Position numbers and translations under genes: made by a program. Under the pieces are notes generated by a model. The model ran no database searches and had not been told where the DNA came from. It saw nothing but the letters and a program-made list of their open reading frames with translations. Below are positions 40,235-43,536 of a DNA stretch of 64,000 nt, in pieces (position 1 is the first letter of the stretch; each line of letters opens with the position of its first letter). This DNA is from Epithemia pelagica (taxonomy: Eukaryota; Protista; Bacillariophyta): positions 1 to 64,000 of the forward strand of contig OX459761.1 in NCBI GenBank assembly GCA_946965045.2. The letters are read 5' to 3'.

Positions 40235-40298
40235 AAAAATATATTAAATATAATTGTTAATTTTTAAAACGCTTAATTTTGAAGAAATTTGAAACAAG

Positions 40299-40372
40299 GG
40301 CGAGTGACCGGACTTGAACCGGCGAATGGTGGAACCACAACCCACTGCCTTAACCACTTGGCTACACCCGCC
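40299..40372 (-). tRNA. trnH: tRNA-His(GUG)
   Basis: G(-1)GCGGGTG acceptor, TTGTGGT anticodon loop. Confidence 0.97.
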
Positions 40373-40493: not shown

Positions 40494-40507
40494 ACTAATA
40501 ATACATT
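40494..40507 (+). repeat. Left copy of 14-bp direct repeat (attL-like)
   Basis: ACTAATAATACATT, identical to 43516-43529. Confidence 0.9.
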
Positions 40508-40568
40508 TCAGAGTTTAATTGGGATTCCTCGTGTGACCTTTGAACGATCTCTTAAATTAAAATATTTA
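40494..40568 (+). pseudogene. 3' continuation of the split rep gene
   Basis: TNNTFQSLIGIPRVTFERSLKLKYL begins with the same TNNTF codons that end ORF339, in the same frame. Confidence 0.65.
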
Positions 40569-40984
40569 CCTATCAAGGTGGGACAAATCAGGAAGTTAAA
40601 TCAATTAATATATATAATGAAGAAGAAAATCGAATTGCAATCTTCAAACGATCTACAGGTGAATTTATGACATTTTGTGAGCCTAATGATGACGAACGAG
40701 AGGATCTACTAGAAACAGGAAACTTTGGAGGTCAATTTGGATGGTTCAGCGGTCAAGCGAAAAATGTTCCTCCAAAGGTTAAAGCAGAACAAAATGTTGC
40801 CGATGAAATTACGCCAATCGATAGCTTTGAGAGCCATGTGATGGGTATAACGCCTGCTCCTGCGTATGAATTTTCAAGCGTAGACGAAGGACAAAATCCA
40901 GGATTTACTCCACTGAATAGTTTCGATAGCGACGTTATGGGAATAACACCGTTAGATTCTTCATCATCGGACTATCAAATTTAA
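40568..40984 (+). pseudogene. Colicin D-like tRNase toxin, C-terminal half only, plus repeat tail
   Basis: TYQGGTNQEVKSINIYNEEENRIAIFKRSTGEFMTFCEPNDDEREDLLETGNF aligns by eye with the colicin D C-terminus (GTY...FN...VVIIKSNGEFLSGW...YLETGEL); includes the 105-aa ORF 40667-40984. Confidence 0.65.
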
Positions 40985-41004
40985 TTAACCTCAAGAAATA
41001 ATGT

Positions 41005-41472
41005 ATGATCAATATTAATTATAATCTAAAACGCCATATTGAATTATTAAAACAGGAAAAAAAAATTCTAAATGAAAAAAAATCTTTTTTGAAAGAAAAT
41101 CCAAAAGAAGCTTTAGAATTAATTAAATACGGCGCGAAAGTTAGTCAACATATTGTGTGGGAAGATCGATTTGAAATTGCTTCAATAATGGAAGACTTTT
41201 TGAGTAAAAAGATAAATGCGCATGAATTTCATGATAGTGTGTTTGGACTTCGTCGTAAGCATTCAGAGAAATGTAAAAGATTTCTATCAAAATTAGTTTC
41301 GGAAGAAATAAAAGATTTTTGTCCGAACAAAAATGCACATAAATTAAAAGGATTTTTATCGGCCTTGTATTTTGAATGCGAGCATTTTGAAACGAATTTC
41401 GATGAAGCCGAATTATATACTTCTATTGAAAATGGATTTTTTAAATTTCAAATAATTTTGAATGAAGAGTGA
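41005..41472 (+). CDS. Colicin D immunity (ImmD)-like protein, 155 aa
   Basis: FLSKKINAHEF...LRRK and LYFECEHFE match ImmD [11 protein letters not shown]...ERRR and LFMAAERFE; lies directly downstream of the toxin remnant. Confidence 0.65.
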   Translation: MININYNLKRHIELLKQEKKILNEKKSFLKENPKEALELIKYGAKVSQHIVWEDRFEIASIMEDFLSKKINAHEFHDSVFGLRRKHSEKCKRFLSKLVSEEIKDFCPNKNAHKLKGFLSALYFECEHFETNFDEAELYTSIENGFFKFQIILNEE

Positions 41473-41503
41473 TAAATTATATTACTCTTCATTCAAAATT
41501 ATT
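41451..41503. terminator. 20-bp inverted repeat at the end of ORF155
   Basis: AATAATTTTGAATGAAGAGT / ACTCTTCATTCAAAATTATT. Confidence 0.7.
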
Positions 41504-41785
41504 TTATTTTTATCTTAACCACTAAAACCCGACCATTTTAAGGCCAGAATTTCATTGAGGCATCAGAGCTTTAAAAGACCCTCTCAGAGCATATTTGAAA
41601 TTACTTCCTTGGCTTGATTTGATCCCCGATTAAACCCTTCAATATTTCCCACCAACATTGTTCATCTGGGGTAAACCCTAAATGAACCTCTATATTTTGT
41701 TTTTTATTTATTATTTTTAAACCCTTTACAAATAAATTTCTAAAATGCATACTTAATAAACAAATGTTAAAGAAGGAGTAAAAAG

Positions 41786-42430
41786 ATGTTTGAAGAAATT
41801 CCAAAAAATTGTAAATATGCGTATGCACGCGTAAGTTCGAAATCACAACAAGATAATTCTTCTTTGGAATTTCAGAAACAAGAGTTTCTGAAACTCGGGG
41901 TTCCTGAACAAAATATCCGAGTTGAAGTTGGATCTGCTGCGGATCCCATCAAGGATCGGCCAATTTTCTACAGTTTGATTGATAATGAATTAACTCAGAA
42001 TGACCTCTTATTTGTTACTAAAATTGATCGTTGCAGTAGAAATACACTTGAATTTTTAAAATTACAAGAACGTCTCCATAAAAAAGGTGTTACCTTTATT
42101 TCATTGGATTTACCATATTCCAATGATATGGCTGTTAATAAGTTAATCAGTACTAATCTAGCAGCTATTGCTACCTTTGAGAATGAAAGAAGAAAAGAAC
42201 GTCAACGTCAAGGAATTAAAGCAGCCAAAAAAGCTGGTAAATATTTAGGAAGAAAAACTGTTATTACTAAAAAACTAATTGCACAAGTTCAGGATCTAAA
42301 AGAAAATAAAAATTTATCCATTACCGAAATAGCTAAAATTACGGGTCGGGGTCGAAATACCATTTATAAAGTTTTAAAAGAGGAATTAAAATATATTCCT
42401 TACAATCGATTAGTTAAATCAGATAAATAA
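41786..42430 (+). CDS. serC: Serine recombinase, resolvase/invertase family (called serC in diatom plastomes; not phosphoserine aminotransferase)
   Basis: YARVS with catalytic S17, DRCSR, GKYLGRK, C-terminal HTH (SITEIAKITGRGRNTIYK); AGGAG SD. Confidence 0.95.
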   Translation: MFEEIPKNCKYAYARVSSKSQQDNSSLEFQKQEFLKLGVPEQNIRVEVGSAADPIKDRPIFYSLIDNELTQNDLLFVTKIDRCSRNTLEFLKLQERLHKKGVTFISLDLPYSNDMAVNKLISTNLAAIATFENERRKERQRQGIKAAKKAGKYLGRKTVITKKLIAQVQDLKENKNLSITEIAKITGRGRNTIYKVLKEELKYIPYNRLVKSDK

Positions 42431-42516
42431 ACTATAAAATGTTCTCTTATCGCCCTCTCAGGAGCTCAATAATCAATTTTAAATCATTTTACGTATAAAC
42501 CTACAGGAGGTAAAAA

Positions 42517-43536
42517 ATGGATCCAAAATCCTTAAATTTTCATTATCAAAATTTAGTTGTTGATTGGATATCTTTTAAGTTTCAAGATTCACAGTGTGAT
42601 CAAAATAAAATTGCAAATTATTTTTTTAATCTTGGATTTAACTCTTATCAACAATCTGGAAAATTATCAAGACCAATTCAAGAAAAGATTTTAGAGAAAT
42701 CTAAAAATCAATTTCAGATTTTTTTTCTTAACGATCATCCGTATTGGAAAGGTACGATTCTTCAATTATCAGGCTCAAATGCTAGTAGATTTTATTTTCT
42801 TGCAAAAAGAAACAAAATCGATTGGCAAATTCTTGAAAAAGCTACACTAAGTCGTTTTGATATAAATTACTGCCGAGAAAATAAAAGAGATAAAATCTCT
42901 TCATCTGATTTTATTGAAAATTGTTATACTAAATTAAAACGAACAAATTATAAAGTTCAGCTTGAGAAAAATAGAAAAGGTTCTATTCTAAGAATAGGAA
43001 ATCGAAAAGCTAATCATTACGGACGTATTTATCAACAAAACAATTCTTTAAAATTCGAGTATGAGATGAAAGGTAGATTTCTTCAGAAATTTCATAAATT
43101 ATTGGTTTCAAATAATTTTGAAGAAATCGAATCTAAGTTAACAAAACAATTTCTATTTTATTTTGGAAAATTATTACCTCTTCAACATTCTTATCTTGAT
43201 TGGTTGGTGCTGCAGTTACGTCCTATTCGAAAGCAAAAGACTTTTCAACTTGGTTTACAATCCGATTATATAAAATCTGAAAGCAGCATAAATTCAGAAA
43301 CTCTAATTCAATTTATCCAATTTTTGAATTATGCTCAAAATTTAGATTACACAATTCAAAATTTGGATGAAATTTCTTATAGAAAAGTTACTTTTATAAT
43401 TAGAGATTTTATAACCTATCAAAATCCTACAATTAGTTCCAAGAATCGTTATCAATTACAAAAAACAAAAGATTTTTTTCAACGTCTTCAAACTGGAGTA
43501 TTAATAACTTCATTCACTAATAATACATTCAAATGA
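42517..43536 (+). CDS. Plasmid replication initiator, Rep_trans-like, C-terminally truncated
   Basis: VDWISF, SRFD (R113/D115), IGNRK...RIY (Y172), KFEYEMKG; AGGAGG SD at 42505-42510. Confidence 0.7.
   Translation: MDPKSLNFHYQNLVVDWISFKFQDSQCDQNKIANYFFNLGFNSYQQSGKLSRPIQEKILEKSKNQFQIFFLNDHPYWKGTILQLSGSNASRFYFLAKRNKIDWQILEKATLSRFDINYCRENKRDKISSSDFIENCYTKLKRTNYKVQLEKNRKGSILRIGNRKANHYGRIYQQNNSLKFEYEMKGRFLQKFHKLLVSNNFEEIESKLTKQFLFYFGKLLPLQHSYLDWLVLQLRPIRKQKTFQLGLQSDYIKSESSINSETLIQFIQFLNYAQNLDYTIQNLDEISYRKVTFIIRDFITYQNPTISSKNRYQLQKTKDFFQRLQTGVLITSFTNNTFK
43516..43529 (+). repeat. Right copy of 14-bp direct repeat (attR-like)
   Basis: ACTAATAATACATT, ending 3 nt before the thiS ATG. Confidence 0.9.

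Follow-up and report, generated by a model that had tools for sequence, protein, structure and literature searches.

The stretch of DNA considered here (the window) comprises the first 64,000 nucleotides of contig OX459761.1 of the diatom Epithemia pelagica (GenBank assembly GCA_946965045.2), and the element of interest within it is an open reading frame (ORF) of 155 codons at positions 41005-41472. This ORF is probably the immunity half of a toxin-immunity pair of the colicin D/ImmD type that derives from chloroplast plasmids. The assembly that was searched comprises 60.5 Mb in 23 contigs, the window lying on contig 23, and the surroundings of the locus are chloroplast genes (ccsA-like, rps16, rps4, trnH, thiS and pheT-like). 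The interval between trnH (40298-40371, minus strand) and thiS holds four plus-strand ORFs, and the features on which the following argument depends are these:

40494-40568, plus strand: left end of an integrated plasmid, 75 nt (blastn; equal to positions 2698-2772 of plasmid contig L014 at 100% identity)
40565-40984, plus strand: remnant of the putative toxin gene (match at 40565-40981, continued through the stop codon to 40984)
40667-40984, plus strand: ORF of 105 codons inside the toxin remnant
41005-41472, plus strand: putative immunity (antidote) gene, an uninterrupted ORF of 155 codons from ATG to TGA
41450-41504, plus strand: hairpin over the stop codon of the immunity gene (fold energy and terminator-like scan)
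41786-42430, plus strand: intact, plasmid-type serine recombinase gene, serC (Pfam Resolvase, E = 1.9e-27, and HTH_7)
42517-43536, plus strand: truncated rep-like gene, 339 amino acids (aa) (BLASTP E = 4e-33 to ORF486 of plasmid contig L001)

An earlier reading of the window, made from the letters alone (hereafter the sequence-only reading), had described the gene as free of lesions, and the uninterrupted frame agrees with that description. It had also described the neighbours as truncated. This holds for the toxin gene, of which residues ~307-445 are left, and for the rep-like gene, whose 339-aa product aligns by BLASTP to residues 1-347 of its 486-aa relative, but not for the serine recombinase gene, which is intact and keeps the order relative to its neighbours that is seen in plasmid contigs. 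The latter are plasmid-like metagenome contigs of ~4.6 kb, read as circular, in which the order is serC, the 486-aa rep-like gene, a 445-aa gene and the 155-aa gene. The gap between the last two genes is 21 nt in these contigs and the same in the window. Of the 71 loci that were fetched, about 40 have the two genes side by side, and the two diverge together (31-100% and 37-99% identity). The plasmids pCf1 and pCf2 of Cylindrotheca and pHSC and pHSM of Haslea silbo share with these contigs their size (~3.5-4.6 kb), the presence of serC and integration into the chloroplast genome, and the genes of diatom chloroplast plasmids other than serC have been given as hypothetical ORFs (PMC3971590, PMC8070900); an assignment of any of them as toxin or immunity gene was not found.

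A word-indexed search identified 154 close homologues of the 155-aa protein (55-99% identity), mostly of exactly 155 aa, in marine metagenomes and in diatoms (Nitzschia ovalis, Amicula). When 1.84 billion representatives were searched with a profile built from 39 of these homologues (A1), 508 clusters were retrieved at E <= 1e-3, and the full-length clusters listed are mostly of ~150 aa and are aligned from about residue 4 to the end. The alignment-based AF2 model of the protein is all-helical (pLDDT 94.3, pTM 0.84); its ImmD-like part begins at about residue 54-55, and residues ~1-54 form a two-helix N-terminal extension. The sequence-only reading was accurate in counting ~55 additional N-terminal residues, but it regarded them as an extra domain. 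Since the ~150-aa members are aligned end to end, the N-terminal part belongs to the regular make-up of a large family, and the notion of an add-on peculiar to the window copy was discarded, given its conservation in the listed members. The ~20-aa insert reported in the same reading holds only approximately: the aligned segment is 96 residues long here and 85 in ImmD and, judging from the model, the extra piece is likely the non-helical loop at ~99-116.

The likeness to ImmD was established through relatives of the protein and through its fold. When 62 diverse family members were scanned singly, 20 matched PF09204 (Colicin_immun), while any other family was matched by at most four. One of the 62, the 148-aa protein P0255, which is found at full length by the A1 profile (E = 3.3e-11), is the only member above the curated cut-off of 22 bits; it scores 26.1 bits over profile positions 4-85 of 88, in a region that corresponds to residues ~54-139. 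A second profile, built from the 62 members (A2), has ImmD as its two best matches among PDB sequences (1tfk_B and 1v74_B, E ~0.7), and its alignment places family positions 56-88 on ImmD residues 4-36. In structural comparison ImmD (1tfk_B) comes first among 48,161 solved chains (Z 8.5, rmsd 2.6 Å, 77/86 residues, 22% identity), with an alignment that spans model residues 55-150 on ImmD 3-87. Foldseek pairs the model with 1v74_B at a probability of 0.92 and a TM of 0.61 by target, and a cluster of the ESM Atlas, 14% of whose members belong to PF09204, reaches a TM of 0.83 to the same model. The first place among 48,161 chains, together with the 20 of 62 relatives that match PF09204, puts the resemblance beyond chance, and the C-terminal ~100 residues are supported as a diverged Colicin_immun (ImmD-like) four-helix bundle. 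The sequence-only reading had called the protein ImmD-like and had proposed a profile and structure search for the four-helix fold as a check. Both kinds of search point to ImmD, and the relatives have a partner of colicin D fold upstream of the gene; moreover, the first ImmD segment given in that reading is genuine ImmD sequence, and the A2 alignment reproduces the register that had been proposed for it.

The decisive evidence for the ImmD identity of the 155-aa protein is this neighbour of colicin D fold. The model of the 445-aa toxin contains one confident domain (residues ~220-360, pLDDT ~90), for which Foldseek has colicin D in all of its top five places (E 1.5e-5 to 7.7e-5, probability 1.00, 23% identity), with a TM by target of 0.71-0.75 for three domain-only colicin D chains. 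By VIA-align, the domain superposes on 5znm_B with a Z of 11.8 and an rmsd of 2.0 Å over 100 residues (26% identity, ColD 596-697) and on 1tfk_A with a Z of 10.7, and the best entries other than colicin D are CdiA-CT toxins, which share the fold in a broad sense (Z <= 7.8). In 40 toxin sequences, residues K256, H260 and G261 are invariant, and all three fall within the superposed part (model 252-360 on ColD 604-697). The catalytic Lys/His of colicin D presumably lie in the region equivalent to this K...HG motif, and the three toxin residues would be their counterpart. A connection in sequence is offered by L074 (267 aa), the product of the gene upstream of P0255, which matches the toxin-domain profile (hhalign 99.5%, E = 4e-22). 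Its sole Pfam match is Colicin_D (PF11429; E = 0.024, 15.5 bits versus a cut-off of 25) and its sole PDB sequence match is colicin D (E = 0.23), the motif GTYR being common to both. A tblastn search of the plasmid collection with P0255 gave no match.

Outside this domain, the N-terminal 220 residues of the toxin have no Pfam match and are modelled with low confidence. They contain two hydrophobic helices (residues 46-62 and 156-179, ahead of the tRNase domain in the gene at L001:2840-4174), the first of which is followed in many homologues by an Ala-x-Ala-like motif, and the helices suggest a toxin that is anchored in a membrane or exported. The tail of the toxin (residues 363-445) is conserved and predicted to be disordered, and it carries two copies of the motif 'NSFESDVMGITP'; it is kept in the window at 40730-40981.

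The binding of the two partners was approached by co-folding the L001 toxin domain with the immunity protein encoded on the same contig, along with three controls. The complex model reached an ipSAE of 0.90, versus 0.44 for the best of the three controls; the score mark applied is attained by 51 of 78 solved complexes and by 2 of 108 mismatched pairs. Contact agreement between runs was at least 95%, and the pLDDT of the partner was at least 90. On the toxin side, the predicted interface is formed by domain residues 31-38, beside the invariant K35/H39, and by the C-terminal helix (124-135), and on the immunity side by the extension (residues 18-51) and the bundle (residues 74-94 and 115-130). 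The model thus supports toxin-immunity binding and suggests that the N-terminal extension provides a second grip on the toxin, and neutralisation of the toxin through this binding is considered probable.

Several observations weigh against this identification. The window protein lies below every Pfam and PDB sequence threshold, and its link to ImmD is transitive and structural: by sequence it has no Pfam, NCBIfam or PDB match (and none to PF09204 at E <= 1 by hmmscan), the close-family profile has no usable match among PDB sequences, and a six-frame search of the whole assembly with the PF09204 HMM yielded no match at E <= 10. The Z of 8.5 falls in the range of unrelated helix bundles, and because unrelated bundles occupy the next entries, at 8.2 and 7.9, it is insufficient alone for a protein of this architecture. 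With regard to the toxin, the 445-aa family has no Pfam match, PF11429 is matched by none of 40 full-length and none of 31 domain sequences, profiles of the full-length toxin and of the domain found no match among PDB sequences, and Pfam returns for the domains weak PBECR2 matches alone (5 of 31 sequences, best E = 0.015). The assignment of the catalytic histidine is tentative, and the complex score may reflect likeness only, because ColD-ImmD is itself a solved complex.

On such grounds it could be argued that the 155-aa protein is an unrelated helical protein of the plasmid, for example a regulator or a partition factor, and that its likeness to ImmD is that of a common bundle, given that it lacks a direct HMM match and that unrelated bundles appear at Z 7-8 in the same structure search. 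This is very improbable, since PF09204 is the only family repeatedly matched by the relatives (with one of them above the curated cut-off), the adjacent gene independently matches colicin D, the natural partner of ImmD, and the complex model passes its controls. The ImmD-like ancestry of the gene is therefore supported by transitive sequence homology, fold, gene context and a predicted complex that passes its controls.

The history of the locus can be read from its alignment with the plasmid contig L014, which is circularly permuted, so that its toxin gene wraps over the contig ends. By blastn, window 40848-43529 equals L014 1-2711 at 90.6% identity and window 40494-40568 equals L014 2698-2772, a segment internal to the rep-like gene, at 100%. 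Both end matches include L014 2698-2711, and hence an identical sequence of 14 bp, which lies within the rep-like gene of the plasmid, stands at both ends of the insert (40494-40507 and 43516-43529). The plasmid-derived DNA stops at ~43529, beside thiS. At 40568 the match leaps to L014 4348, which marks the joint of a 1,575-bp deletion that took the 3' end of rep and the first ~307 codons of the toxin, the Lys/His motif included. What remains of the toxin, as located by tblastn and by the genome search, are residues ~307-445 of the 445-aa relative, which comprise its final beta-strands and C-terminal helix together with the repeat tail. In the window, the frame of the remnant starts just past an in-frame stop (~40556) and has its first ATG at 40667, and the 105-codon ORF is 87% identical to residues 341-445 of ORF445 of L001 (BLASTP). 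These alignments show that an L014-like plasmid integrated and subsequently lost the larger part of its toxin gene, with the immunity gene left whole. The genome search found no second copy of the toxin or immunity gene in the assembly.

A related module was observed in run X3 (organism A; recorded kind uncertain), in which a contig of 2,474 nt contains window 40773-41457 with two differences. The flanks of this contig differ from those in the window, with an A-run before 40773 and a diverged serC, which suggests a recent spread of the shared module between hosts or sites.

The selection that acts on the immunity gene was evaluated by pairwise Nei-Gojobori comparison of 29 distinct full-length coding sequences. 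The median dN/dS is 0.33 over 388 pairs (range 0.13-0.93), so the family as a whole is under purifying selection; a comparison of dN/dS among homologues had been put forward in the sequence-only reading as a check, and its outcome is not neutral family-wide. By part of the protein, the ratio is 0.27 for the ImmD-like region and 0.40 for the N-terminal region. By context, paired copies have a ratio of 0.33, and those with a truncated or missing toxin one of 0.27. At several chloroplast sites (L006-L009, L010, L015, L038-L041 and L021) the 155-aa gene is intact but is not accompanied by a whole toxin, and the copies of L006-L009 sit near rps6 and a Cytochrom_C_asm gene. Retention of such orphan genes is plausible because of both the family-wide purifying selection and the recurrence of toxin-less copies.

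The sequence-only reading had left a choice between a recent gene and one retained as protection against free plasmids with the cognate toxin. For the copy in the window, the chances that it is still in use are evenly balanced. Its protein differs from the L012, L013 and L014 copies at three residues (I61V, S78N and E101Q), and the gene shows 3 non-synonymous and 0 synonymous substitutions versus L012, 3 and 2 versus L013/L014, and 6 and 2 versus L015. With only 3-8 differences from the nearest relatives, selection and recency are inseparable for this copy, a point that speaks against continued use, as does the result of the genome search, which found no intact toxin gene in the assembly. The alternative is that of a young relic, an ImmD-like gene by descent that is idle here and is intact only because the integration and the loss of the toxin are recent. 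Consistent with this, the toxin tail in the window shows 98% DNA identity to that of a plasmid contig, the encoded protein is those three residues away, the substitutions versus L012 and L015 fit neutrality, two neighbouring plasmid genes are already broken and the assembly has no cognate toxin. The alternative must nonetheless accommodate the recurrence of intact copies beside truncated or absent toxins in independent chloroplast settings, the dN/dS of 0.27 among toxin-less copies, the equally intact 3' hairpin and the coverage of the immunity gene by contigs from RNA libraries, and it is regarded as a serious possibility that nevertheless falls short of being probable.

The evidence from RNA libraries consists of assembled contigs from four runs, some of them from relatives, against which 3,201 nt of the window were compared. 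Two metatranscriptome studies contribute contigs that match 40568-41472 at 90-100% identity, of which one extends upstream into intact toxin sequence, and one of the four runs contains the whole compared stretch unchanged and is probably its source. These contigs attest to the presence of the sequence and, particularly as some come from relatives, are not proof of transcription, which again tempers the case for a working gene. A promoter scan at the locus performed no better than on shuffled sequence.

The perfect 25-bp hairpin at 41450-41504 (-29.8 kcal/mol, z -10.6) takes in the final codons of the immunity gene together with its stop, and a T-rich run comes after it. Of the related loci that were inspected, on plasmids and in chloroplast genomes, most retain a GAAGAGTGA...TCACTCTTC hairpin in this place, and both arms of its stem show changes. 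The hairpin resembles a terminator or a stem-loop that stabilises the 3' end, and it may also constrain the conserved C-terminal 'NEE' of the protein.

Colicin-type and polymorphic toxin-immunity pairs are bacterial weapons and addiction devices, and either role could be considered for the pair described here. As an addiction module, the pair would secure its plasmid through post-segregational killing in the chloroplast instead of serving in defence, and an orphan copy such as that of the window would be an anti-addiction gene that permits loss of the plasmid. The toxin is devoid of colicin-type translocation and receptor domains, its hydrophobic helices would hold it in the compartment that produces it, and the pair lies on small multicopy plasmids beside replication and recombination genes, all of which suits addiction. 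Less in keeping with it is the fact that single contigs (L001, L010, L012, L027 and L039) bear several diverged pairs and solitary immunity genes, given that such multi-pair contigs are usual in competition systems with immunity arrays, and an addiction role is judged rather unlikely. The diverged second toxin-immunity pairs and lone genes of the immunity family that share contigs with the main pair have 24-43% identity, and they resemble the immunity arrays of bacterial polymorphic toxin loci. Their positions are as follows:

L012:8442-9901
L001:6757-7176
L010:3932-4300 and 5913-6368
L027:933-1427
L039:5727-6164

The reading favoured here, that of an immunity gene with a protective role, can be set out as a sequence of steps. 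The homology, the fold, the synteny, the map of integration and deletion and the family-wide purifying selection are the established parts of it. The pair resides on circular plasmids of ~4.6 kb in the chloroplasts of pennate diatoms. Its toxin, of ~445 aa, is composed of an N-terminal part with two hydrophobic helices, a tRNase domain of colicin D fold (~222-362) and a repeat tail and, by analogy with colicin D, it would cut the anticodon loops of tRNAs and halt chloroplast translation. The immunity protein would form a one-to-one complex with the tRNase domain that blocks it, with the ImmD-like bundle placed next to the invariant Lys/His motif of the toxin and the family-specific N-terminal helices clamping the C-terminal helix of the toxin. 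In the chloroplast genome of the window, an L014-like plasmid recombined between trnH and thiS by means of the 14-bp sequence in its own rep gene, and the loss of 1,575 bp after integration left a dead toxin stub beside an immunity gene and a 3' hairpin that are intact. The surviving gene may still serve, most plausibly by guarding the chloroplast against related plasmids that carry the toxin.

The closest known counterpart of the protein is ImmD of E. coli (chain B of 1TFK, 1TFO and 1V74; PF09204), with which it shares the bundle over 77/86 residues at 22% identity, including the 'FL..KI.A.EF' helix, the position of the gene just 3' of a tRNase gene of colicin D fold and in the same direction (here, in the intact relatives), and the predicted placement against the catalytic face of the toxin. 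The differences are also considerable: ImmD has 87 aa versus 155 here, where a conserved two-helix extension contributes about half of the predicted interface; the loop at ~99-116 is longer here, and the window protein is below the Pfam threshold; and ImmD belongs to an enterobacterial Col plasmid, whereas the present family is found on plasmids of a eukaryotic organelle and in chloroplast genomes. The domain of the 445-aa relatives shares with the colicin D tRNase (5ZNM and chain A of 1TFK; PF11429) its fold, at an rmsd of 2.0 Å, and in the distant toxin relative L074 also the GTYR motif. Unlike colicin D, the diatom plasmid toxin has two hydrophobic helices in place of translocation and receptor-binding domains, its tRNase domain is not C-terminal and is followed by a tail of ~85 residues with the two 'NSFESDVMGITP' repeats, and this domain has no significant HMM match. 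CdiA-CT/CdiI and other polymorphic pairs of the BECR fold share the arrangement in which a small gene for the cognate immunity protein comes after the toxin domain, the rapid joint divergence, and the presence of extra pairs and orphan immunity genes on the same DNA. These systems are bacterial and are delivered from cell to cell, while the present one lies on a chloroplast plasmid with no delivery machinery evident.

Literature that combines diatoms, plastids or plasmids with colicins, immunity proteins or tRNases was searched, most subscription journals lying outside that search, and no such plastid pair was found in it. If the reading is correct, a toxin-immunity pair of bacterial kind is regular cargo of plasmids in a eukaryotic organelle, and a function can be offered for two of the genes that have long been given as 'hypothetical ORFs' in diatom chloroplast plasmids. 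The reading would also provide a possible reason for the persistence of these plasmids and for the recurrence of intact pieces of them in chloroplast genomes. It thereby becomes possible to test whether orphan immunity genes are retained by organelle genomes as a defence against parasites of their own. In its broadest form, the proposal would be that the chloroplasts of pennate diatoms host large, fast-diversifying sets of bacterial-type tRNase toxin-immunity pairs on selfish plasmids, from which their genomes repeatedly capture immunity genes as standing protection, so that organelle and plasmids would be engaged in an immune-like arms race at the level of organellar translation; this generalisation is offered tentatively, with the balance of probability still tilted against it. 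The pair could, in addition, be used as a selection or containment tool in the engineering of diatom chloroplasts.

Elsewhere in the window, an ORF of 318 aa at 15263-16219 (plus strand) is without any Pfam match and has relatives of 47-66% identity on six metagenome loci that bear the immunity family (L018, L023, L048, L050, L052 and L070). This ORF may be another gene of plasmid origin in the chloroplast genome.
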